Source: Octopus bimaculoides (taxonomy: Eukaryota). From it: a stretch of DNA of 37,918 nucleotides. Location: positions 122,794,231 through 122,832,148 of the forward strand of contig NC_068981.1 of NCBI RefSeq assembly GCF_001194135.2. Direction: 5' to 3'. Shown here one piece after another: positions 2,382-35,943 of this stretch. Both the position numbers and the translations under genes were made by a program. The notes under the pieces are model-generated. The model did no database searches. It saw nothing but the letters and a program-made list of their open reading frames with translations, and was not told the origin of the DNA. Every line of letters starts with the position of its first letter. Within the stretch, counting starts at the first letter, position 1.

Positions 2382-2460
<79 letters not shown>

Positions 2461-2469
2461 TAATAATAA

Positions 2470-2818
2470 TGCAACACATATGCTATACAGTTGATGTTGC
2501 ATGTCCCTTGGACCTGCGAATAGTCAAGAAGGTAGTCGAAAGGAGAGATAGATACCACCCTCTTAAGTACGAAATAGACCGGCTATGGAAAATGAAGAAG
2601 GTGAAGACAGTGCCAATCATTCTTGGCACAGTATCAGAAAGTATCGTGAGGAATATAAAGGAAATTAGAATAGTGTGAAGAGTAGAACTGTTACAAAGGG
2701 TTTGCCTCCTTATAATCAGGAAAGTATTAGATAACTGAAAAGAGTGAATAACATGGTACCGTAGGATGCATGTAGTAAAACTGTAGGAGCCCCAACAAAA
2801 CCTGTGATAAGGAGAAAA
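2470..2818 (+). mobile_element. R4/Dong-type LINE copy B (3' end only, distinct subfamily)
   Basis: ICYTVDVACPLDLRIVKK..RY..LKYEIDRLWKMKKVKTVPIILG..VELLQRVCL is an RLE C-terminus; both sides are trinucleotide tracts. Confidence 0.78.
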
Positions 2819-2851
2819 TAATAATAATAGAAATACTACTACTACTACTAC

Positions 2852-2945
<94 letters not shown>

Positions 2946-3034
2946 AAGAAGAAGAAGAAGAAGAAGAAGAAGAAGAAGAAGAAGAAGAAGAAGAAGAAGA
3001 AGAAGAAGAAGAAGAAGGAGGAGGAGGAGGAGGA
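2819..3034 (+). repeat. Compound trinucleotide microsatellite (AAT/ACT/AAT/GAT/GAA/GGA)
   Basis: Read directly from the sequence. Confidence 0.97.
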
Positions 3035-5736: not shown

Positions 5737-5790
5737 TTCTTCTTCTTCTTCTTCTTCTTCTTTTTCTTCTTCTTCTTCTTCTTCTTCTTC

Positions 5791-5828
<38 letters not shown>
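5737..5828 (+). repeat. (TTC)n(TTA)n microsatellite
   Basis: Read directly; forms the tail of copy E. Confidence 0.95.
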
Positions 5829-5844
5829 NNNNNNNNNNTTTTAT

Positions 5845-7166
5845 GTTTGACTTTTGTTTTGCATTTGTACAAGTTGGATCCAAGTCTCACCCAGAGACCT
5901 CAAGAGACAACAAGTTAGAAATTCATGTAGGTGATAGGCCTAGGGTACCATATATTTAGATTTGTACATAGTCTTGTTCTAGAGAATGTTTAAGAAACCA
6001 TAAGGAAATTATGTTTGTTTTAAAATTTGAGATCACATAGACAGTATTTTACGTAGGATATGGGCAGTTCCCATGAGCACTATCTTTTGAAGTTCAGCCA
6101 TTTTGGGGTTTCCTGGTATCTGAGCTAGGTAGTAATCAGCCCATTTTACTGTCATTCCCAGGGCACCTATGACAATAGGTATTGTTTTTGTCTTCAGGTT
6201 CCACATTTTGCTAATTTCTATTTCAAGATCTTTATATTTGCTCAATTTTTGGTAGGTCTTGGCAGATACGTTTATATCGATTGGGACAGTCATATCAATG
6301 AGGAGGCATGATTTTTGTCTAAAGTCTTTCAGTATGATGTCTGGCCTATTTGCATCTATCTTTCTGTCAGTTTGAATGGNNNNNNNNNNNNNNNNNNNNN
6401 NNNNNNNNNNNNNNNNNNNNNNNNNNNNNNNNNNNNNNNNNNNNNNNNNNNNNNNNNNNNNNNNNNNNNNNNNNNNNNNNNNNNNNNNNNNNNNNNNNNN
6501 NNNNNNNNNNNNNNNNNNNNNNNNNNNNNNNNNNNNNNNNNNNNNNNNNNNNNNNNNNNNNNNNNNNNNNNNNNNNNNNNNNNNNNNNNNNNNNNNNNNN
6601 NNNNNNNNNNNNNNNNNNNNNNNNNNNNNNNNNNNNNNNNNNNNNNNNNNNNNNNNNNNNNNNNNNNNNNNNNNNNNNNNNNNNNNNNNNNNNNNNNNNN
6701 NNNNNNNNNNNNNNNNNNNNNNNNNNNNNNNNNNNNNNNNNNNNNNNNNNNNNNNNNNNNNNNNNNNNNNNNNNNNNNNNNNNNNNNNNNNNNNNNNNNN
6801 NNNNNNNNNNNNNNNNNNNNNNNNNNNNNNNNNNNNNNNNNNNNNNNNNNNNNNNNNNNNNNNNNNNNNNNNNNNNNNNNNNNNNNNNNNNNNNNNNNNN
6901 NNNNNNNNNNNNNNNNNNNNNNNNNNNNNNNNNNNNNNNNNNNNNNNNNNNNNNNNNNNNNNNNNNNNNNNNNNNNNNNNNNNNNNNNNNNNNNNNNNNN
7001 NNNNNNNNNNNNNNNNNNNNNNNNNNNNNNNNNNNNNNNNNNNNNNNNNNNNNNNNNNNNNNNNNNNNNNNNNNNNNNNNNNNNNNNNNNNNNNNNNNNN
7101 NNNNNNNNNNNNNNNNNNNNNNNNNNNTATTGTCCCCTTCAATTACCCTAGATATTTGTAGCTCTC

Positions 7167-7167: not shown

Positions 7168-7242
<75 letters not shown>

Positions 7243-7244
<2 letters not shown>

Positions 7245-7909
7245 CAGTAGTTTTATTTATATAACGTGGTTTCACTTTACTACCGAGCGCAGCTCTGTGT
7301 GCCTTCAATATGTGCTGTGGTTTGCTGTGATCCTCTTATGGTCACTGTATTGGAAGTGTTTTGCGTAGGATGTGTGCAGTGCCCAGTATTGCAATTTTCT
7401 GTATGTTATATATATTTGTAAGTCCTGGTGTTTTTGTTATGTATTTGTGTAAATATTATTTTATCATACCTAAGGCTCCTACTATGATAGGAATTGTTTC
7501 TGTTTTTAGATTCCACATTCGAGTTACCTCTATTTCCAGGTCTTTGTATTTTGAAAGTTTTTCCATTTCTTTTAGGGAAACATTGTCATATGCTGGTATT
7601 GATACATCAATTAGAAAGCAGATTTTTCTTCATGATCTTTGACAACTGTACCTGGTCTATTTGCCTTAATTTCTCTATCTGTGTGTATTGGCATATCCCA
7701 GAGCATGGTTGCTTTCTCGTTTTCTATGACCTTTTCTATCGTGTGTTTATACCATCTTTTTTCTGTTGTTATTCCATAGTGCTGGCATAGCTTCCAGTGT
7801 ATATAGGTCCCAGCTCTGTCGTGTCTGAATATATTTCTTCTTAGCCAGGAATGGGCAGCCAGAGATAATATGATTTATTGTTTCTTGTCCATCTCCACAT
7901 ATTCTACAG
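7243..7909 (-). mobile_element. R4/Dong-type LINE copy F (about 670-bp 3' fragment, near-duplicate of the 3' end of copy G)
   Basis: Aligns by eye to 8041-8711 with scattered substitutions; (TTA)n on both sides (7168-7242 and about 7915-8040). Confidence 0.88.
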
Positions 7910-7912
7910 CTA

Positions 7913-7978
<66 letters not shown>

Positions 7979-7993
7979 CATTATTATTATTAA

Positions 7994-8040
<47 letters not shown>

Positions 8041-8042
<2 letters not shown>

Positions 8043-9700
8043 CAGTAGTTTTAGTTTTATAACGTGCTTTCACTTTACTACCGAGCGCAGCTCTGTGTGC
8101 CTTCAATATGTGCTGTGGTTTGCTGTGATGCTCTTATGGTCACTGTATTGGAAGTGTTTTGCGTAGGATGTGTGCAGTGCCTAGTAGTGCAATTTTCTGT
8201 ATGTTATATATATTTGTAAGTCCTGGTGTTTTTGTTATGTATTTGTGTAAATATTATTTTATCATACCTAAGGCTCCTACTATGATAGGAATTGTTTCTG
8301 GTTTTAGATTCCACATTCGGATTACCTCTATTTCCAGGTCTTTGTATTTTGGAAGATTCTCCATTTCTTTTAGAGAACCATTGTCATATGCTTGTATTGA
8401 TACATCAATTAGAAAGCAGTTTTTTTTCTTCATGATCTTTGACAACTATACCTGGTCTATTTGCTTTAATTTCTCTATCTGTGTGTATTGGCATATCCCA
8501 GAGCATGGTTGCTTTCTCGTTTTCTGTGACCTTTTCTATCGTGTGTTTATACCATCTTTTTTCTGTTGTTATTACGTAGTTCTGGCATAGCTTCCAGTGT
8601 ATATAGGTCCCAGCTCTGTCGTGTCTGTGAATATATTTCTTCTTAGCCAGGACTGGGCAGCCAGAGATAATATGATTTATTGTTTCTTGTCCATCTCCAC
8701 ATATTCTACAGTTACTTGTTATATTTCTTTTCATTATGTGTTTTTGGTAATTTCTGGTGGAGAGGCTTTGGTCTTGTGCAGCAATTAAAAATCCTTCAGT
8801 CTCTGCTTTGAGTTCTGAGTTTCTCAGCCATTGCTGGGATTTTTCTCTGTCTATTTCTTTCGCATTTAGTTTAGCCCAGTATTTACCATGTAGGGGCTTT
8901 TCTTGCCATCGTTTTATCATGGNNNNNNNNNNNNNNNNNNNNNNNNNNNNNNNNNNNNNNNNNNNNNNNNNNNNNNNNNNNNNNNNNNNNNNNNNNNNNN
9001 NNNNNNNNNNNNNNNNNNNNNNNNNNNNNNNNNNNNNNNNNNNNNNNNNNNNNNNNNNNNNNNNNNNNNNNNNNNNNNNNNNNNNNNNNNNNNNNNNNNN
9101 NNNNNNNNNNNNNNNNNNNNNNNNNNNNNNNNNNNNNNNNNNNNNNNNNNNNNNNNNNNNNNNNNNNNNNNNNNNNNNNNNNNNNNNNNNNNNNNNNNNN
9201 NNNNNNNNNNNNNNNNNNNNNNNNNNNNNNNNNNNNNNNNNNNNNNNNNNNNNNNNNNNNNNNNNNNNNNNNNNNNNNNNNNNNNNNNNNNNNNNNNNNN
9301 NNNNNNNNNNNNNNNNNNNNATTTTATAATAGTTTTCTAGCTGTATAAGACCCCTGACACCTTCTGTGCGTTGTATATATAGCCTTTCTATGTCAGATTT
9401 TGGGTGGTGCATCCTATATCCTGTCATTATTTTTCTTGTTTTCCTGTCTATTTTACATAGTTCGTTTAGTGCCCAGTTAAGGATGTTGTAGCTGTAGCTT
9501 ATAACTGGGACAGCTAAAGTGTTGATACCCATTATCTTGTTTTTAGCATTGAGCTCTGTTTTTAGTATTGATCTAACTCGTCTATAGTACTCTTTCTTTA
9601 TTTTTTCTTTCATTTGTGTATGTTGTATCATATCTAGTTCGTCCATATCCAGAATATAGTTCATTGCCTTCTAATAAGAGATATTTCCGAGTCCTGTTCA
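8041..9700 (-). mobile_element. R4/Dong-type LINE copy G (RT thumb to RLE, N gap 8923-9320)
   Basis: KEKIKKEYYRRVRSILKTELNAKNK..NTLAVPVISYS..DRKTRK..RLYI..GRGLIQLE; W..KPLHGKY; ETEGFLIAAQDQ; CCHC knuckle CRICGDGQETINHIISGC; RHD; LWDMPIHTD; KYKDLEIEV..IVGALG. Confidence 0.92.
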
Positions 9701-11592: not shown

Positions 11593-11806
11593 GATGCTAA
11601 CGATCTTTAATTTGGTTTTAGATTGTTCTTTTCCATTAAAACATACACTTTCAAATCGGAATTCTTTTTAATGTCCAGCCTGTGCTAAAAATGTTTTATG
11701 ATTAATTTTAACACAATTTATGTCTCCGCTGAGAATGTTTTATGATTATGTTTGACTCTATAAATCCTTGCCCATCACTTAATGAATCCTTCCTGTTCTA
11801 ATGTAG

Positions 11807-11916
11807 GTTTGGTTAGACGTTAATCTGCGATGGGATCCTGACAAATACAACGGTATCAAAGTGGTCCGGATTCCTTTTACAGATGTCTGGAAACCTGATA
11901 TACTACTATACAATAA
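11807..11916 (+). CDS. CHRNA9/10-like: nAChR alpha subunit, internal coding exon (110 bp; extracellular domain up to loop A)
   Basis: Flanked by ..atgtAG and GTaagt. Translates [36 protein letters not shown] plus 2 nt, the classic WxDxxLxWxP..[10 protein letters not shown] segment. The trailing AA joins T24091 to give AAT (NNAD). Not in the ORF track. Exact orthology is not established. Confidence 0.95.
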
Positions 11917-12150: not shown

Positions 12151-12385
12151 GGTGGTGAGCTGGAATAATACTTAGCATTTCGAGTAAAATGTTTCACAGC
12201 ATTTCTCCGATTTACACGTTTTGAGTTCAATGTCCGCCGGGGCCGACTTTACGTTTCATTCTTTCGGGGTCGATAAAATAAGTGTCATCCAGTACAAGGG
12301 TCGATATAATTAACTCATCCCTTACCCGCAAAATTGCTGCTCATGTGTGGCAAAATTTGAATCCATTATTATTATTATTATTATT
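12151..12385 (+). mobile_element. tRNA-type SINE (GGYGGTGAGCTGG.. family) with (ATT)n tail
   Basis: Homologous to copies at 23682 and 27283: GAGCTGG head, GAGTTCAA B-box, GTCGACTTT..TTCATCCTTTCGGGGTCGATAAA core, AAATTGCT..TGTG..AAAATTTGAA end. Confidence 0.8.
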
Positions 12386-12388
12386 GTT

Positions 12389-12820
12389 CAGTAGTTTTAT
12401 TTTTATAACGTGCTTTCACTTCACTACCGAGCGCAGCTCTGTGCGCCTTCGGTATGTGCTGTGGTTTGCTGTGGTGCTCTTATGGTTACTGTATTGAAAG
12501 TGTTTTGCGTAGGATGTGTGCTGTGCCCAGTAGTGCAATTTTCTGTATGTTATATATATTTGTAAGTCCTGGTGTTTTTTGTTATGTATTTGTCTGAATA
12601 TTTTTTTTATTATACCTAAGGCACCTACTATAATAGGAATTGTTTCTGTTTTTAGATTCCACATTCGAGTTACCTCTATTTCCAGGTCTTTGTATTTTGA
12701 AAGTTTTTCCATTTCTTTTAGAGAAACGTTGTCATCTGCTGGTATTGATACGTCAATTAGAAAGCATTTTTTTCTTCATGATCTTTGACAACTATATCTG
12801 GTTTATTTGCCTTAATTTCT
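12389..12820 (-). mobile_element. R4/Dong-type LINE copy H (F/G subfamily, 5'-truncated)
   Basis: ANKPDIVVKD..LSKYKDLEIEVTRMWNLKTETIPIIVGALGIIK; same 3' end (..AAAACTACTGA) as F and G; (TTA)n on both sides. Confidence 0.9.
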
Positions 12821-14204: not shown

Positions 14205-14299
14205 ATTACTCATGGATAATCCATTTAATTACATGTTATAACATATAATTAAATGGATTATCCATGAGTAATATGATTTCACTGAAATGAAATCATATT
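14205..14299. repeat. 68-bp near-perfect palindrome plus an overlapping 12-bp-stem hairpin
   Basis: ATTACTCATGGATAATCCATTTAATTA-C-ATGTTA|TAACAT-A-TAATTAAATGGATTATCCATGAGTAAT (14205-14272, one mismatch). AATATGATTTCA-ctgaaa-TGAAATCATATT (14270-14299). Confidence 0.92.
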
Positions 14300-15563
14300 G
14301 CTTTCCTCAGTACTAATCTAAATTTTTCGATAATAATCTACCTTCAGTAAGTCGTCTCAATAAAAGAATTGAAAGTAAATATTTCACATGCGTGCGACTG
14401 AAAATCAATTTTAATCTAAAGATTGGCTCCATTTGCTCACATTTTCAAGTATTATTTGATTAAGAGTGATTTCATCGATTATACACGCATACGAAGGCAT
14501 TACAATGTGCACATAGAGCATACACACCTGTCTATAACCACGCAGTCAGTCGTTCTTTTGTTCATTTTAGGACTTGATATCCGTATTATGAACCTGTATT
14601 ATAAATCTCGCAAGAAATAAAAAGTTTCAAACATGACGTGTATGTATATACAATCAAGAGAATAGTTACTACTTATATTGAATTCGACCATTACTGCTAG
14701 AACTAATACAAACATTATGACCAAAATATATATCACCTTAGGACTAATAGCTGCTAAATAATCCTTTAATAAGAAAAAGGTCAACTGTCTTTCAAAATAC
14801 GTTCTAACCATCCATATAGAAGTATCACATATGCAATCAATATAATTAGTACCATTGTTACGCAATATATTTCTGAGCAGAAAGAGAATAGTTAATTTCC
14901 CCGCTCTTTAGTAAATGGATGTATTGAGAAAAGCGATTTTGAAGCAAAATAAAAAGAAATCCAGTGAATAATAGAAAAATATAATCCAACTGGCTTACTT
15001 CTCTTACAAGCATGAATGAGACCCCTGCACGCAAACGGATATTTTCATTGTTGATCAAAGACAATTCTTCACTGCATACGGATAATTGTTTAATAAAAGC
15101 AAAATTAACCAAGATCTATCCTGTGTCAACATCCCGCTATATTAGTAATTCTGTACTAAGCTAATTGATTCTCATTTCCAAATCAATGAATTTAAGAGAG
15201 GTAATTAAACCTACTCTGCACCAAGACTAATGACTAAACAAGACACAAAATTTCCTCGACCAACAAGAGAAAACAAGTTCAAGTCCTGTTTCACAGAAAC
15301 TAACTTCTTATAAAAGACTTTCTATTATGTGTATGCACGTATTAATAAATAGCTAATTCACTCAAAGAAGTTTCTGTGAAAGAGTGGTTATGGGTGTGTA
15401 CGCTTGTAGATAGGCTGAAATTTTTTAATAAAAATTTCGTATAGTTATGTTGTGTCGACGCTCCCAGACGATGAAGTAGGCTAGCCCAATACGTAGATAT
15501 AGAGGGAGAAGTCTAGACGTCGGGAGAGTTGAGTAGAGGTCAACCGAACGTGCGATGTAACAG

Positions 15564-15593
15564 TGGCGACGAGGATGAGATTCGAACTCACGC
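15564..15593 (+). other. tRNA-Ser(GCT)-complementary primer-binding-site-like sequence (30 nt, includes the CCA complement)
   Basis: The reverse complement GCGTGAGTTCGAATCTCATCCTCGTCGCCA matches the 3' end of eukaryotic tRNA-Ser(GCT) (GCGTGGGTTCGAATCCCATCCTCGTCG+CCA) with a compensatory A:U pair in the T-stem. It follows ..TAACA-G, as a PBS follows an LTR. Confidence 0.8.
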
Positions 15594-15603
15594 TGGAACA
15601 TCT

Positions 15604-15730
15604 CCACTGTTATATCGCAATACTATAGAGTGGCTGTGTGAGCTACGAAATACTCGTCACCACTGTTATATCGTAATACTACACAGTGGCTGTGTGAGCT
15701 ACGAAATACTCGTCGCCACTGTTATATCGC
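15604..15730 (+). repeat. 56-bp tandem repeat (2.3 units) in the foldback spacer
   Basis: CCACTGTTATATCG starts at 15604, 15660 and 15716. Each unit holds a CCACTGT..ACAGTGG-type hairpin and, on the minus strand, an LTR-end/PBS junction (GATATAACAG-TGG(C/T)GACGAG). Confidence 0.9.
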
Positions 15731-16128
15731 ACGTTCGGATGACCTCTACTTAACTCCTTTCTTTATTTGGCACTACGGCCACAACACAGAGGGGGACACT
15801 ACAAGGACAGACACAACACCACAATGGGGACAAAAAAAAATAAAACGATAATGAGATGTTATATAAAAATGAAGAAATGAAATGGCTGCATGGGCCCCAT
15901 TCCCATGCAGTACCATTTGAACATTTATATATACTATTTCTATTTAGCATCGTTCACTTTTTCTATTGTTTGTTTCTTAATTATCTTTTTTTCCCTCTTT
16001 TTTTTTCCAGAAAATGCTTTTGCTTTTCTTGGGCTCTTTTGTTCATTTTTTTCCTTTGTTTTTTCCTTTTGCTTTTTCTTTTTTCCCCAACAAAACAATT
16101 TTACTCTTTTTTCTTTTTTTTTTCCTTT

Positions 16129-17547
16129 TTAATACCTCATGAAAGGTTCCAAGTCTTTTACCTCGACTTCTGGTGGACGTTTGTCGAACTCCACCAACAC
16201 TCCTGACGGGTCAATCTTGTCTCCGTACATGTCTCTCAGTCTCTTGTCTGTGTCCTTATCGACAACAATGGCCTTCTCATTCTTGGAGTACACATCCGTG
16301 GGTAACTTCACTCTTATAATAAGTTTGATATTTACAAATTTTCTCTCCGTCTCCTTGTTTTTTGCATGTGTCACAAAATTCCATTTGTTTTTTCCTCTTC
16401 TTGGTTTTTTCTTTTCTTCTTCCACTACTGGTGTCTTTTCCTTTTCAACTCTGAACAATCTCTCCATTTCACCCTCGCACAGTTGCACTCCCGAATCTTT
16501 TACCTTCGCTGGGACAACCGGCGTCTTTAGCACTGTTTCCTCCTTCTGTAACTCCTTCTCGAACACCTTTTCAATTACTTTCTCGCTTTCTTTTTCCACC
16601 ACCCCTTCGTCTGCCTTTCTTCTAGTCACAGCTTTCCTTTCCACCTCTTCTTTCTCCTGTTTCTGGTTTTCTGGTGGCGGGCTCGTTCTTCCACTTCTTT
16701 TTCTTTCCGCCACTGTGTATCCCACCTTCGTTGTATTTTCTTCTATCTCCACCTGTACTACCTGGTTCATGTTCTCCTGCTTCTCCGTCTGTTCTCTCTA
16801 TAGGCACCTCACCTTCATGTGGCCTTTCTCCCCATATGCAAAACATATAGGCGGCCTGCCCTCCACTTCCAATCTCAATCTCAAGTCGTCGAGCAGCACT
16901 ATATACTCAATGATTCTATTTAAATCTTCTACTGTTGCTTGGATAATGAGCTCAATCCCATATCCCCAGTAATCTATACTTTGTGTCCATATGGCCTTCA
17001 GTATCTTGGCCTCCTCCTTCATGCTGAACATTATTGCTGTCAGCAGCCATGATTCTTTTAGTTCTGGAGGCACTTTGCCTACTCGCACTCTGGCCACACG
17101 TTTGCCACAGTTCGAAGGCAAAAACACTCCCCTCTTCCGACCTTATTGCCTCTGTGGAGTGCTTAATTGCTTCTTCCTCTATTGCAAAACGTACCTCCAC
17201 GGTAGCATACTTTATTCCTTTTGTTATAAATTTGTTTCCTTATACTTTTCAAACATTTGTTTCCTTATACTTTTCAAACATTCCTCAATCTCCTCCACTG
17301 TCGCGAGCTCTATCTTTCTTTCTGCGATGTTCATTGTTTTGAATACCACAGTTCTTTTTATTACACAGCTTGTCAGTTCTGCAGGCAGCGTCAACTTCAA
17401 CGTCTCTCCGACTTTCTCCAGCAACTTCTCATATTTTTTCATTTTCTTCGGCTCCATCTTAATTTCAATTGTTACCAATTTTCCCTCCTCTGTTCCTCTT
17501 CCAGTTGCGGCCGCATAACTGTGGCCATCCACCGGCGTTTTCTCCAT
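16129..17547 (-). pseudogene. Disrupted LINE ORF1-like (L1/Tx1-type, zinc-knuckle) protein of roughly 470 aa; no ORF2 present
   Basis: MEKTPVDGHSYAAAT..; RVRVGKVPPE..W; LEVEGRPPICFAYGEKGHMKVRC (CCHC with the second Cys changed to Tyr); long K/E-rich tail ending at the stop at 16129. Disrupted by a 25-bp tandem duplication (17231-17280), a +1 shift in a G-run near 17130 and an in-frame TAG at 16798-16800. Confidence 0.8.
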
Positions 17548-19064
17548 TTTTCCCCCAATGGGAAGAGAAAAAAAAAACAATTCACGAACAATATCAACAA
17601 TCAAACAGCAATAATTAACAACCAATTTTTCAACAAACAAATATTCAACGTTCCGACTTACTTCAAAATACTCCGCTTTCGACAACTCAACTCTGAAGAA
17701 CTCTTCTCAACTCTCCTGATGTCTAGACTTCTCCCTCTATATCTACGTATTGGGCTAGCCTACTTCATCATCTGGGGGCGTCGACACAAATTATAATTTA
17801 ATTTCACATCTAGATACAAACGTTATGATCTCTGAAGAAAACGGAATTAGATATAGTAGCATTCATACATTCTACTGAAATTAATGGCAAAGGTGTAGAG
17901 AAATGACTTCAGACAATCATTTAAATTTGGTTGGTATTTCTAGCAGCCAGAAGATTAATATTTTCATAATTCAAAAGACAATAGCGCTGTATTGCCTATA
18001 CAGTAAAATGTTAGTTTGCGCCAAACCTATGCGGTTCCAGGTTTCTCCACATCGCGTCGGGGATTGGTTAATTAATGCTGGTCGTAAACTGGGTTCGACA
18101 CATGACCTGTGATATGCAAGAATATAAAGTATGTGAAATGGTGCCATCTTTTTTTTGTGTGTGTGTGTTTGGTTTAATCCATCATATATTCGGTGCATTT
18201 AGTAGATTTCACGACGTCTACCGTCTGAGACGACTTGGTAACTCTGGATTTCTTCTTCATAGAAAGCCTATAAGTCGTTGTTTCTTAGCCTTTTCTCCCA
18301 CAAGACGGTGATTAAAAATTAAACACACTTTCGTTCTTCCTTTTAGCAACCGATATGCAAAATAAGAAGAATGAACTACTATATTTGTGACGTTTTCAAA
18401 TTTATGAGTCACACATAATGCATTGGTTTGACAGAGTATATTATTGGTAGTCTATCGAATCGGGATGAAGACTAAAAACTTCCAACACATTGGATTATGT
18501 AACTACAAGACTACAGGCCTCACATTTTATATTTCTACAACGATGAAACCATTTCACAAATAACAATCGATAATTACTATGCGCAAATACTGTTAATTAT
18601 GCCCATTCATAACTTTATATACATTATTTCTTCCTATATACTATATGTATTAGGATATTTTGTTAATAAACAGAACAATCTGATCATGAACATAAATTTC
18701 TCACTCATAACTAAGGCAATCATTTTCCTGTGATTAGAAGTTTCAGTATGACGTCTTAAAGTTAGAATGGACACGTGTATCCGTTAAATGAAAATTAATT
18801 TGACCTGCAGCACAGGAGGATAGTTATAATAACAGAGAAATAAAAGCGCAACGTATCTTTAGCTGCAAGTAGAAATAATTAATCTTTTGAATCAAATTTA
18901 ATTATGCTAATAACAAAATAAAAGATTTGTTTACCATTTTTTATATATTTTAGTGAACGTGCAATTTCAGCTTCCTAGAGGTAATTTTTCAATCAGTTAA
19001 ATTGTAAACTAACTGTGTGTATGTGTGTGAGAGAGTGAGAGAAAAAGAGAAATAATATATATAA

Positions 19065-23896: not shown

Positions 23897-24090
23897 TATT
23901 TTTTCTAAATATCTTGTTATTTCCTATAATTCAATTAATAGTTCATTCGAACAACTGCGATCAGTTGTTTTTTATATATAAACTTTTCGGCGAAGTGCAT
24001 TTTGATCAAGTGTATGACATTGTCGTATATTTTTTGTTCACCTAACATTCATTGTAATGTATCATTAACTTTTCTCTTCCTATTTTGCAG

Positions 24091-24629
24091 TGCCGACGTG
24101 ACTTCTTATTTTTCTTCATTAAGTTCAAATGTTATCGTTACAAGTGAAGGCAACGTCACGTGGTTGTCAATGGTGATATTCAAAAGTTCGTGCAGGATAG
24201 ACGTTCGTTACTTTCCTTTTGATGAGCAAAATTGCTCGATGCAGTTTGCTTCGTGGACTTACGACGGTTTCCAGCTGCAGCTGCGCATGAACTCTGAAGA
24301 AGGAGATATCTCCAACTACATCCGTAACAGCGAGTGGGTCCTCATTAAGCTTCACGTTGAATGGAATTTAGTCTACTACTCTTGCTGCATTGAACCTTAT
24401 CCGGATATCACTTACTATATTCAAATACGTCGTAGACCTTTGTTTTACGTCTTCAACATGATTCTTCCCTGTATTCTCATTACGTTAGTGGCTCTCCTTG
24501 GTTTCTATATTCCATCGGATTCTGGCGAGAAAGTTACCATGGGTATTACAACACTGCTGTCCATGACAGTATTTATGATGCTTGTTGCCGAAAATATGCC
24601 GCCCACGTCAGACGTTTTGCCACTTATTG
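24091..24629 (+). CDS. CHRNA9/10-like: nAChR alpha subunit, coding exon (539 bp; Cys-loop, loops B and C, TM1, TM2, TM2-3 linker)
   Basis: Polypyrimidine tract plus cAG acceptor at 24089-24090; donor G|GTAAGT at 24630. Encodes the Cys-loop CRIDVRYFPFDEQNC, loop B SWTY, loop C YYSCCIEPY with vicinal cysteines, RRRPLFY-TM1, and DSGEKVTMGITTLLSMTVFMMLVAENMP (TM2). In frame with exon 11807-11916. Confidence 0.97.
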
Positions 24630-25049
24630 GTAAGTTTTTATTACAGTTATGTTTCACTGTATTAGTCACTAATATTGTTAGCGTGCTATTAAATGTTTGT
24701 GTTGTGTTAGACGCTGCATGGATTTAAACAATAAGAAGAATATATTTCAGCATTCTGTCCTAAAGTGAACATTAATACATCATACGTTTATGCGGAGATC
24801 AATAAATTTTAGTTGCGACAATTTTGATGACAATAGCGTATGGTACAAAGTGAAACCAATAACATTTTCTGGGTTGTAAGAAATGTAAGAATCTCGGGAA
24901 AAATATCTTGCAGTATTTCTTCTAACGCTTTCACTATTTTTGAGTTCGAAACAAGCTGCTGTCAAATTTGCCCTAACAATCCCTGTGTTGAGTCTCTAAA
25001 TTAGAAATTGTTATTAGCGTTCCTGTTTTATTGTTGTTTATTTCCAGAT

Positions 25050-27191: not shown

Positions 27192-27263
<72 letters not shown>

Positions 27264-27282
27264 CATTATTATTATTATTATT
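26728..27282 (+). mobile_element. Probable retroposon 3' end or SINE with (TTA)n tail (27194-27282)
   Basis: GC-richer block ending ..ATCAGGGCAT-(TTA)n. No ORF. The repeat call rests on the tail and my recollection of similar octopus repeats, and needs a library search. Confidence 0.42.
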
Positions 27283-27388
27283 GTGAGCTGGCAGAATTGT
27301 TAGTGCGCTAGACAGAATGCTTAGCGGTAGTTCACCCGTCGCTAGGTTCTGATTTCAAAATCTACCACAATCGACTTTGCGTTTCATC
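27283..27388 (+). mobile_element. Same SINE family, 5' part, cut by an N gap
   Basis: GTGAGCTGGCAGAATTGTTAG..AATGCTTAGCGG..TCGACTTTGCGTTTCATC directly after the (TTA)n tract at 27194-27282. Confidence 0.72.
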
Positions 27389-27546
27389 NNNNNNNNNNNN
27401 NNNNNNNNNNNNNNNNNNNNNNNNCCCTACGCCTCGCCACCACCACCACCACCACCAACAACAACAACATCAATACCTTTGTAAAACATCTAAATGCTAT
27501 TTTGCTAAAGGGCTTCCCTTTTTTCTTTTACTTCATGTTCTGTTTC

Positions 27547-27585
<39 letters not shown>

Positions 27586-28607
27586 NNNNNNNNNNTTATT
27601 ATTATTATTATTATTATTATTATCATTATTATTATTATTATCACTGTTATTATTATCGTGAGATGTGCTAAAATTAACAGGTAAATAGGCCTCAAATCAT
27701 GAACCCAAAATACTTTTCGTTTTGATTTTTGCATAATTGTATGAATTAACGTGCGTAGAATACAAATTTACAAAACTTTTCTAAAAAATCCCAAGAAAGA
27801 AGAAAATTATGTCATGCGTAAAGCAGAATTCCACCAGTATCTTATTTGTTTACAGGTGACATCATGTGCTGTCACGCACAAAATGACAGCTTCTAAGTCT
27901 TGTTTTCGGACTGGGTAAAAATCATCAACATTTAAACTTCTATAACTTGTTTTTAAATTTTCCTGGGAAAAGTTAAATATTCCCCGAGATTCAGCATGGA
28001 AAATTACATCATTACACCAAATCTTAAAATTTTCACTAAATTTTAAAATTTCCACAGGTGCGGCCAAACAGTAAAGATCCTCAATGCCAATAAAATAAGA
28101 ATCAGTTGATCATTCACGTAATCTATCGACTCCTTCCCCACGTAATTCCAGGCCTTGTGCTTATTGCAGAAAGGATTATAAGAAGGGAAAATAACAAATA
28201 TAGCAAGTAAAGCTTAAAAAATCGTTCTAATATTCACATACAATCATTAACAATCCTTTAAACTCTCAGAAGCGATTTAAAAATGAATATATATGTGTGT
28301 GTTATGTATGTGTTCGGTAATAGTTTTTTTTTATTTATTTCACACAGAGTGAACAGTTATGTAACTCCTACGCTGTGGATCGTTAAAATAAAGGATTTTA
28401 ATCTTTTTAAAAAGAATATTTCTTAACCAATTCATTTTCCTTCTGCTATGCTGTAGATACAGTTGACTACAGGAATAACTTCACTGAATATTTATCTTGT
28501 ATTTTACAACTCTCTGACTGTAAGCGGGAATTTGAAATACTCTGTAGTATGAAATGGAGGAAAATTGTGAGACAACTGAATTTAGCAATTGAGTAAGATT
28601 TATTTTA

Positions 28608-33169: not shown

Positions 33170-35943
33170 TCCCCATTGACAAGAAAAGAAATGTAAGTCA
33201 CGGAAAGTTGACATAAGTTTATGGTGAAATTAGGATCATATTACATCATTACATCAGTACAAATTAAATAAGTACCGGTTTCACGATCAAACGATTGTTA
33301 GCTTATATAGCGAAAACTTTTTTGCTGCTAATAGGACGCCATCTTTGAAAAAAGAAACAGGGACTGTTGAAAACACCAGGCACTATACACAATAATCAAC
33401 AAGACTACACCTCATTCGATAACATCCACCACTCCCGGGGATTATTAAAAACACCAGGGACTATACAAAATTATGAACATAGACTCTACAAACACTCATA
33501 CAATCATAACAACCTAATCCCTCACCTTCACCACTCACACAACGGAAATCCTCATTTTTACATGAACAACCCATACACACACAAAAACAACCAACATCTC
33601 ATAACCACTTACCAGAGTAAAGAGGTTCTATTCTGGGCCGCACCTAACACCACACACCCATACACACGAGACACTCCAAAACAACAAAGTTACCACACAC
33701 TACCTCCCCTCCCCACAAGCAACCCATACCCAAACAACCGACGTTTTTTAGTCACACACCAGAGGAAACAGATAACAAGGTGAAACCCGAGACACAGGAG
33801 AAACCCAAGGTAATCAATCTCTCCCACTTATCCTTATCCGACATTAAGATAGACATCCTCTCCAAAGGACTCAAATTCACACCGACTCCCTTCAGAGTCA
33901 ATCAAAGTGAAATTAAAGACAGTGCCTCAAAGTTCTGCAGGAAATTGAGACTTTCAGAGTTACTGACCGATTTTTATGATCAGGATGAATCACTGGTCAA
34001 AAACAAAACTGAATACACTCCCCACAAAGAAAGAAACAAAAGACTTGATGAATTTTGCAAACACTTCGAACACTTTCCCTATCACATCCTGCACAAACAA
34101 AAGAACATCTCAAACCTCAACAAAATCCAATCGAAAGGAATTAATGAACTGCAAAACAATAAAGAAATTACAATCAAAGAAGCAGACAAAGGCAGCGCAG
34201 TGGTAATTATGGACACATCCTAACACAGAAATCTAGTCCTGTCCTTACTAAACAACAATGAGTTTAATGAAGAAATCAACAACTACAATCCCCCAAAAAT
34301 AATGAAAATCCTTTTCTCATTAATACATACACACGGGAAAGACCTCACAAAAATGTAAGTAGATTTCCCAACAAATTTCAAATACAAACATACCTTTTTC
34401 TATGGCCTCCCTAAAATCCAGAAAAGCTCAACCATAATGAAGCCATCAACAACTCACCACATACATGCATACATACGCCAGGAAACCTTAGTTTACGACC
34501 TATCATAGCTGGTTCATCCTGTGAGACTCACAGATTAAATTACTTCATGGACATTCTCCAGAAGCCATATCTAAAACATATTAGAAGCTACATCAGAGAT
34601 GATTTAGACATGCTAAACCATCTCCTAGAACAGGTTGGGGAAGAATCCCTCATGGTCTCCTTCCATGGTATTAATCTGTACTCCATCATTCCATATAATT
34701 ATAGAATGGAAGCGATTCGATTCTGCTTAGAACTACATCCAGAGTAAATACGGGAACGGATAAACATGACCTTCATCATTGAATCAAATATTTTGCCAGA
34801 ATAATCATTTCATTTTTGACACCAACTGCTACCGCGAAATATCGGAAATTGCGATGGGAACGAGAGCAGCACCTACCATTGCCAACCTCACAATGGGATT
34901 CTAAGAGAAAAAATGTATCAGAATTCACTGCGAGAATTTGTAGACTCTCTTGCCCAATACATTAAAAAGAACTGGAAGAGATACCTGGATGACTGTTTCA
35001 TACTCTGGAATAACAACTTAAACGAACTCCTAGAATTTAAAATACTTCTGAACAGCATCCACACAAGTATTCAATTCACAATCGAATACAACCAGGAGGC
35101 ACTTCCATTCCTAGACATTCTAATTTTTAAAAAAAATAACAACAAAATCGAAACAGACATATTTTATAAAACAGCAGATGCAAAACAACACCTTCTCTTT
35201 AGCTCTTGCAACCCTAGACACACAAAAACAAACATCCTCTTCAACCTAACAAGAAGCATCAGCACTATTGTCTCAGAGAAAAAAAAATAGAGATTTAAGA
35301 TTACAAGAACTGAAAAACGTCTTCCTGGATAGACACTACCCAATCCAACTCATTAATGAAGGAATAAAACGTACAAAATCCATCAACATCGAGACATTAA
35401 GAAACACCAAAGACATTAAGAATCCTCTCCTTAAAACACTACAATACATTTCTACATATAACCCCAGAAACGAAGAAGTATTCAGCACAATCATACAAAA
35501 CCTACCAATACTACACAAGGAACCAAAACTAAAAAGAATTTTACGTGACATTAAAATTGTCAAAAGCAACAAACAACCTAAGACATTAAAGAAACTACTA
35601 CCTAATGCAAAATTATTCCCCTCCACAACTTCCCCAAAGTAAAATATATAATCGCTCCAACTGTGGTATATGCTCCAAACTTGTGAAAGGGTCAGAATAC
35701 TATTTAAAACAAAGGCAACACTTTAATATTAAATCAAATTTCACTTGTGCATCCGAAAATCTGATCTACATAATCAGATGCTCGGGCTGCCAGAAAGATT
35801 TATTTAATGTGTTATGATGTAATGGTGTGATATGATCCTAATATCACCATAAACTTTATTATACAAACTTTCTGTGACTTTTACTTTTCTTTTCTTTCTT
35901 ATACACTTATCCCACGTGTATACAGAACTTCCATTTTTCACTT

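Follow-up and report, generated by a model that had tools for sequence, protein, structure and literature searches.

A palindrome of LTR-like arms with a tRNA-Ser copy at its centre in an octopus receptor intron: a possible fossil of aberrant reverse transcription

How could two retroelement ends, each followed by a tRNA primer-binding site, come to face one another within a single compact palindrome? Here we examine a foldback element that raises this question in Octopus bimaculoides, where it lies in an intron of a nicotinic acetylcholine receptor gene within a 37,918-nt stretch of contig NC_068981.1 (assembly GCF_001194135.2, positions 122,794,231 to 122,832,148 of the forward strand); this whole stretch is referred to as the window, and all coordinates are positions within it. 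A first-pass annotation had described the element as two inverted modules, each made of an arm resembling a long terminal repeat (LTR) and a primer-binding site (PBS) for tRNA-Ser, and had attributed it to snap-back or template switching during tRNA-primed reverse transcription of a short-LTR element. Our analysis supports the short LTRs and the tRNA-Ser PBS, and locates a contiguous copy of the tRNA 3' end, far longer than previously recognized, at the centre of the palindrome. We consider it possible, at a rough probability of 45%, that the foldback is a fossil left when reverse transcription of a short-LTR retroelement, with tRNA-Ser(GCU) as its primer, went astray; this is a reading of sequence, and we weigh it below against three others.

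The large inverted repeat is present where the first-pass annotation had placed it, as inverted-repeat pairs, BLAST and a direct alignment of the arms all indicate. Its right arm is interrupted by a nested retroposon, and both pieces of that arm cover the same 16 nt of the left arm, so that the interruption is best explained by an insertion that duplicated 16 bp of target. Indeed, the insert is flanked by an imperfect 16-bp target-site duplication (TSD) matching at 13/16 positions (GACCTCTACTTAACTC at 15741-15756 and GAACTCTTCTCAACTC at 17698-17713), and the foldback was therefore once contiguous, in line with the earlier proposal that removing the insert restores it. With the insert removed, the left arm at 15450-15576 (127 nt) pairs with the split right arm with 8 mismatches and no indels (94%), in two overlapping blocks: 15450-15541 with 17698-17789 (92 nt, 93%, BLAST E 5e-33) and 15526-15576 with 15706-15756 (51 nt, 92%, BLAST E 1e-13). 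Homology extends to 15447/17791 if one 1-nt gap is allowed, the outer tip of the right arm having one G fewer than that of the left. Transitions make up six of the 8 mismatches, and three of the 8 fall on CpG sites. The rebuilt element is thus a foldback, as had been claimed, of about 388 nt with 127-nt arms rather than of 383 bp with 124-bp arms. It is predicted to form a single long hairpin (-164 kcal/mol), and its central 206 nt, folded as single-stranded DNA, give a predicted z of -11.5 relative to shuffles. An assembly foldback artefact is ruled out, since the arms differ by 6% and the nested insert is found in one arm only.

Several features of the arms point to a retroelement end. Their G+C content of 51%, inside an intron of 33% G+C, sets them apart as foreign sequence. 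Read inward, both begin with TG and close with AACA, followed by one G and then TGGCGACGAG, exactly as first described. In the left arm, 115 nt long from TG to CA, the two tips TGTTGTGTCG and TGTTACATCG form a terminal inverted repeat (TIR) at 7/10 positions, as read from the sequence. The inverted homology stops at the very TG that pairs with the inner CA end in this repeat, so that a whole LTR was probably the building block; the tip repeat, of the kind seen at LTR ends, supports a complete LTR of ~115 bp in that role. No polypurine tract stands beside either outer TG end, the flanks being AT-rich and mixed (TATAGTTA and its counterpart ATTATAAT), and the outer ends, ...GTCGACACAA(CA), carry no tail of the kind found at the 3' end of short interspersed elements (SINEs). 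The foldback has no coding capacity, with stops in every frame, and neither a repeat search nor BLAST finds a further copy of the arm, direct or inverted, in the 37.9-kb window.

The tRNA-Ser PBS proposed behind each arm is likewise upheld, and on the left the complementary stretch is not 10 nt long, as had been thought, but 30 nt (15564-15593), running through the T arm and including CCA. The minus strand of this interval is identical at 27/30 positions to the last 30 nt, CCA included, of human tRNA-Ser-GCT-1-1 (sequence from PMC10359600); the match is the only one in the window, and none of 100 shuffles of the window reaches such a match. Two of the three differences from the human tRNA sit opposite one another in the T stem with pairing kept (GTGGG/CCCAC to GTGAG/CTCAT), and a T-arm hairpin, GUGAG/CUCAU, is predicted in the copy; because the stem is preserved by paired changes, the source was a real tRNA. 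The third difference makes a G-U pair, and a tick tRNA-Ser fragment has the same ...CCCATCCTCGTCGCCA variant (CGAATCCCATCCTCGTCGCCA, PMC4592253). Alignment to the full tRNA is confined to tRNA positions 55-85, ARAGORN reports no tRNA gene in the window, and the tRNA family in Rfam gives no match at its gathering threshold, nor at E up to 10. On these grounds a tRNA gene, or the flank of tandem tRNA-Ser genes that the first-pass annotation had set against its own reading, is ruled out. The identities of Hammerhead, Penelope and retrozyme were also considered and dropped, there being no Rfam match, and when the literature was searched for the PBS or tRNA string, nothing but primers and tRNA tables came up.

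The right module is a reduced counterpart of the left. On the minus strand it reads LTR...GATATAACA-G-TGGCGACGAGT-ATTTCGTAGCTCAC..., with a PBS core of 11 nt, so that of the two PBSs originally proposed the left is full and the right survives as a core. The two modules share an exact 16-nt inverted match, TAACAGTGGCGACGAG, at 15558-15573 and 15709-15724. What follows the core in the right module weakly resembles the T-arm copy on the left (TTCG-AACTCAC against TTCGTAGCTCAC; shuffle p about 0.10) and has no similarity to the human tRNA. Between the modules lie tandem 56-bp units, each of which opens with CCA-C-TGTTATATCG, a fusion of the tRNA's 3' end with the complementary sequence of the LTR end. 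This junction (CCACTGTTATATCG) is found as an exact repeat at 15604, 15660 and 15716; a further instance, at 15558, runs in the opposite sense. The bases preceding it differ: CCA alone at 15604, CTCGTCACCA at 15660 and CTCGTCGCCA at 15716, the last belonging to the right arm proper. The claim of further LTR-end/PBS junctions in the spacer is accordingly right about the units and wrong about the first junction (15601-15617), which has CCA only and no PBS. Each unit also contains a mini-hairpin (15624-15638 and 15680-15694; ACACAG-TGG-CTGTGT in unit 2), which resembles a collapsed copy of an LTR-end/TGG/LTR-end' junction. The short filler between the tRNA copy and the first unit was compared, together with the bases preceding it, with the conserved variable arm of tRNA-Ser(GCU), and does not match it.

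How, then, might such a palindrome have formed? Since CCA is not encoded by the tRNA genes of eukaryotes, the stretch of tRNA most likely passed through an RNA stage. A genome-encoded PBS, moreover, normally spans about 18 nt of its primer; a 30-nt copy that includes CCA and runs beyond this limit was therefore most likely copied from the primer tRNA itself. Plus-strand strong-stop synthesis usually ends at m1A58, 18 nt into the primer, and proceeds further on hypomodified or unmodified tRNA; strands extended in this way serve poorly as substrates in the second strand transfer (reviewed in PMC13191261). In the reading that we favour, a plus-strand strong-stop DNA (U3-R-U5-PBS, comprising a whole LTR) would have run past the m1A58 stop into the primer tRNA and, unable to make its normal second jump, would have switched strand at its 3' end, with its own sequence or a second plus-sense copy of the element as the new template. 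Copying outward through PBS and LTR, the switched strand would then have produced LTR-PBS / PBS'-LTR'. This dead-end DNA may have been captured in the germline, in the nicotinic-receptor intron, by integrase acting on its two U3 ends or by break repair, after which it would have undergone only decay, the palindrome being later split by the retroposon and its centre acquiring the 56-bp duplication. A single event of this kind would account for arms that are whole LTRs, for the two PBSs, for the primer copy at the centre and for the absence of an internal domain and a polypurine tract. It also suits the geometry of the locus, where the primer copy ends right at the palindrome's centre.

Several observations weigh against this reading. 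The modules are unequal at the centre, with 30 nt of tRNA complement on one side and 11 nt on the other, even though the arms are 94% identical and free of indels; pure self-copying does not predict such inequality, nor does the reverse-transcription model predict the 10-nt filler and the 56-bp units. Given the 11-nt right core and the units at the centre, simple snap-back needs either later remodelling or a second template: perhaps the centre was reshaped by deletions and the 56-bp duplication, or perhaps the second arm was templated by a copy whose leader followed an 11-nt PBS. The mechanism first proposed thus stays plausible in its general form, with the 30-nt central copy favouring over-extension and the unequal modules speaking against pure self-copying. 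The extent of the arms is a further weak point, in that the choice between a full LTR and R-U5 only hinges on a TATA-like motif and on a terminal inverted repeat that is weak, and there is no AATAAA within the arm. To our knowledge, no parent element with direct LTRs has been described. Lastly, in a scan of all boundary offsets and of lengths from 3 to 12 bp, the foldback has no significant TSD and none of 4-6 bp that fits the TG/CA boundaries; the best candidate, TATAGTT/TATAATT (7 bp at 6/7), is matched in score by 11% of site pairs drawn at random from the window; this agrees with the earlier remark that no clear TSD is visible at the outer ends and leaves integrase-mediated entry unsupported.

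It is somewhat unlikely, in our judgement, that the symmetry arose instead by rearrangement of host DNA, whether fold-back repair or a template switch in replication made an inverted duplicate of a solo 5' LTR-PBS remnant, left by an ordinary LTR element or by a miniature retrotransposon with terminal repeats (TRIM), or two head-to-head insertions were followed by deletion between them. Such a history fits the absence of a TSD, and unequal centres of 30 and 11 nt would be natural if there had been two source copies. The short inverted microhomologies at the centre, TAACAGTGG/CCACTGTTA, could have seeded priming by fold-back, and molluscs do have TRIMs in tandem and rearranged forms (PMC6934838). 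What this explanation has to assume, however, is a parent in which a 30-nt tRNA complement was already present, an outer limit of duplication that fell at the LTR tip, and a centre that fell at the end of the tRNA copy; these are three coincidences, all of which one reverse-transcription event would explain.

It is unlikely that the locus belongs to a non-autonomous foldback family of many copies, in which inverted LTR+PBS modules would serve as long TIRs and the unit would be mobilised in trans, whether by a DNA transposase or by an integrase that recognises the pair of U3 ends. Its anatomy invites the idea: long TIRs, a short spacer with tandem units and no coding capacity recall foldback elements and miniature inverted-repeat transposable elements (MITEs), both outer ends stop at the same base, and the 7-bp candidate TATAGTT/TATAATT would serve as a weak TSD. 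That candidate, though, does not rise above background, the 37.9-kb window holds no second copy, the tips show no recognisable transposase-type TIR, and the transcript of a perfect palindrome would be a poor template for reverse transcription. Searches reaching beyond the window, though not into other cephalopod DNA, gave the following: a protein-level search with the open frame through both arms, aimed at spurious open reading frames (ORFs) of other copies, had no match; among metagenome contigs, exact-pattern scans with a first CpG-free arm core also had none, and a second core hit two 19-mers by chance, neither of which extends; scans of viral and prokaryote genomes with arm, PBS and junction patterns found nothing; and exact protein look-ups, of a window ORF and of the O. 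bimaculoides relative of the nested insert's protein, had no entry. A bolder form of the family idea, which we regard as doubtful indeed, is that octopuses harbour an unrecognised mobile class of palindromic LTR-PBS / PBS-LTR units, born of over-extended strong-stop DNA and spread because integrase could accept either terminus as a U3 end; such units would be the retro-derived counterpart of foldback elements. Were there such a family, retroelement ends would have a new route to becoming mobile units of the foldback type, and these would be a source, within genes, of long hairpin RNAs.

Ohshima and colleagues reportedly proposed in 1993 that primer tRNA plus strong-stop DNA gave rise to some tRNA-derived SINEs, a squid SINE among them. 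That the foldback is a pair of 5'-truncated SINEs of this type (tRNA 3' part, CCA, U5-R complement) inserted head to head is nonetheless very improbable: each arm does read outward as tRNA 3' end-CCA-C-TGTTA..., the layout of tRNA-linked minus-strand strong-stop DNA, and a B-box-like GAGTTCGAATCTC is present, but an A box is lacking, ARAGORN, Rfam and alignment alike show none of the tRNA's 5' two-thirds, there is no SINE tail, no LINE-like (long interspersed element) 3' end shared with the rest of the window and no TSD, and two independent insertions with the same truncation point would have had to abut.

The coordinates of the foldback's parts and of the nested insert are collected in Table 1. 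The insert itself reads as a complete, decayed single-ORF gag-like retroposon. Its ORF, from 17547 to 16129 on the minus strand, is broken by 5 in-frame stops and a 25-bp tandem duplication at 17230-17282, and an AATAAA lies near the 3' end of the insert. Among 5.8 billion proteins the sole relative found is A0A0L8I9B4 of Octopus bimaculoides, a 'CCHC-type domain-containing protein' (57% identity, E 3e-113); because this protein has the same first and last residues as the insert ORF, and a detected zf-CCHC zinc knuckle, the insert is taken to be complete.

Table 1. Parts of the foldback element and its nested insert, in window coordinates
Feature	Position	Strand	Evidence
Left LTR-like arm, TGTTGTGTCG...CGATGTAACA	15448..15562 (115 nt)	+	Inverted-repeat pairs, arm alignment, composition
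One G and 30-nt copy of the tRNA-Ser(GCU) 3' end, GCGTGAGTTCGAATCTCATCCTCGTCGCCA; extended PBS on the plus strand	15563..15593	tRNA sense -	Alignment, shuffles, T-arm hairpin
10-nt filler TGGAACATCT, between tRNA copy and 56-bp units	15594..15603	.	Read from sequence
56-bp unit, 2.3 copies, 93%	15604..15731	+	TRF, direct repeat family, exact repeats
Right module PBS core TGGCGACGAGT, preceded by G and LTR end	15709..15719	-	Exact 16-nt inverted match
Right LTR-like arm, inner part, ending at the insertion point	15720..15756	-	Inverted-repeat pairs, alignment
Single-ORF retroposon, CCHC zinc-knuckle gag-like protein	15757..17697 (1,941 bp)	-	Three-frame translation, protein relative, TSD
Outer part of the right LTR-like arm, opening with the second TSD copy (16 nt)	17698..17790	-	Inverted-repeat pairs, alignment

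Both the foldback and its nested retroposon are intronic, lying between two plus-strand exons (~11806-11916 and 24002-24727) of an alpha7/alpha10-like nicotinic acetylcholine receptor subunit. The exons encode a Neur_chan_LBD domain and the membrane region, and human alpha-7 stands out as the best of their solved relatives. In database searches the receptor exon came closest to one on ENA contig ERZ21867824:ctg121649l (86% identical at the protein level), where the intron spans ~3 kb, compared with ~12 kb in the window. No orthologous empty site could be read there, as this contig aligns in the two exons only and its intron is not alignable. With arms 6% apart, the foldback is old and decayed, and its sequence suggests no present function. 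In Octopus vulgaris a repeat clock takes a Jukes-Cantor (JC) distance of 0.065 as about 18 million years (My) from consensus (PMC13282606); applied to the 6.3% divergence between the arms, it would place their origin roughly ten million years ago or more.

The rest of the window is rich in repeats of other kinds. At 14205-14272 lies an AT-rich, near-perfect palindrome of 68 bp (34+34 nt, 97%, no spacer), which could be a tiny foldback, a MITE or a hairpin. A repeat of ~760 bp forms a tandem pair at 7168-7922 and 7966-8725 (96%), with a partial third copy at 12365-12820 (93%); an ORF of 419 aa at 8405-9664 on the minus strand overlaps it; with a weak match to zf-RVT, this ORF is probably what remains of a LINE. 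Two inverted pairs, 1871-2469 with 5755-6379 (82% over 629 nt) and 33181-33271 with 35800-35896 (85% over 97 nt), are probably oppositely oriented copies of transposable elements. Trinucleotide arrays (TTA, ATA, AAG, ATG) are very frequent, for example at 2382-3017, 7168-7242, 7915-8040 and 27194-27656, and the 1-kb stretch at 6001-7000 has a G+C content of 14%.

We regard the foldback as an unusual and mechanistically informative fossil at a single decayed locus, and not yet as a new class. Should the favoured origin by over-extended reverse transcription be true, the locus would be a germline fossil of primer-tRNA read-through past m1A58 followed by a strand switch, events normally seen in vitro only, and would indicate that dead-end reverse-transcription products can reach a chromosome. 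It would also bear on the old proposal that some cephalopod tRNA-related retroposons began as hybrids of primer tRNA and strong-stop DNA. For the host, a single decayed intronic copy has no evident consequence.

Several known systems resemble the foldback in part. Foldback and MITE-like DNA elements such as Drosophila FB and Galileo are non-coding and have long inverted arms around a short spacer with tandem repeats. The octopus element shares this anatomy but differs in its arms, which resemble retroelement ends with a PBS and have no recognisable transposase-type tip or TSD. DIRS-type retrotransposons span several kb and have a tyrosine recombinase, an internal complementary region and no tRNA PBS; like the octopus foldback they are retroelements with inverted terminal repeats, whereas their size, recombinase, complementary region and PBS use set them apart. 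In the SINEs proposed to be of the strong-stop type, such as the squid SINE from another cephalopod, a tRNA with CCA is likewise joined directly to U5-like sequence, while the octopus foldback is an inverted dimer that has the last 30 nt of the tRNA only and lacks both a Pol III A box and a tail.

Similar in their parts are LTR retrotransposons, retroviruses and TRIMs (e.g., the bivalve biv-TRIM, PMC6934838), which like the foldback have a TG...CA repeat with a short terminal inverted repeat and, one base after CA, a TGG... complementary to the 3' end of a tRNA with CCA. At about 115 bp, the foldback's repeat falls inside the TRIM range of 100-250 bp. In contrast to these elements, its repeats are inverted rather than direct, it has two PBSs, its tRNA complement measures 30 nt rather than about 18 nt, and it lacks a polypurine tract, an internal domain and a 4-6-bp TSD. 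Parallels for its extended tRNA copy are plus-strand strong-stop DNA that has been over-extended and the 'primer over-extension sequence' of lentiviruses and spumaviruses (PMC13191261), in which a copy of the primer tRNA likewise runs beyond position 58 into the T arm. There, the extension amounts to a few nucleotides, seen in vitro or encoded adjacent to the PBS; in the octopus it is a contiguous 30 nt, fixed in the germline and set at the centre of a palindrome.

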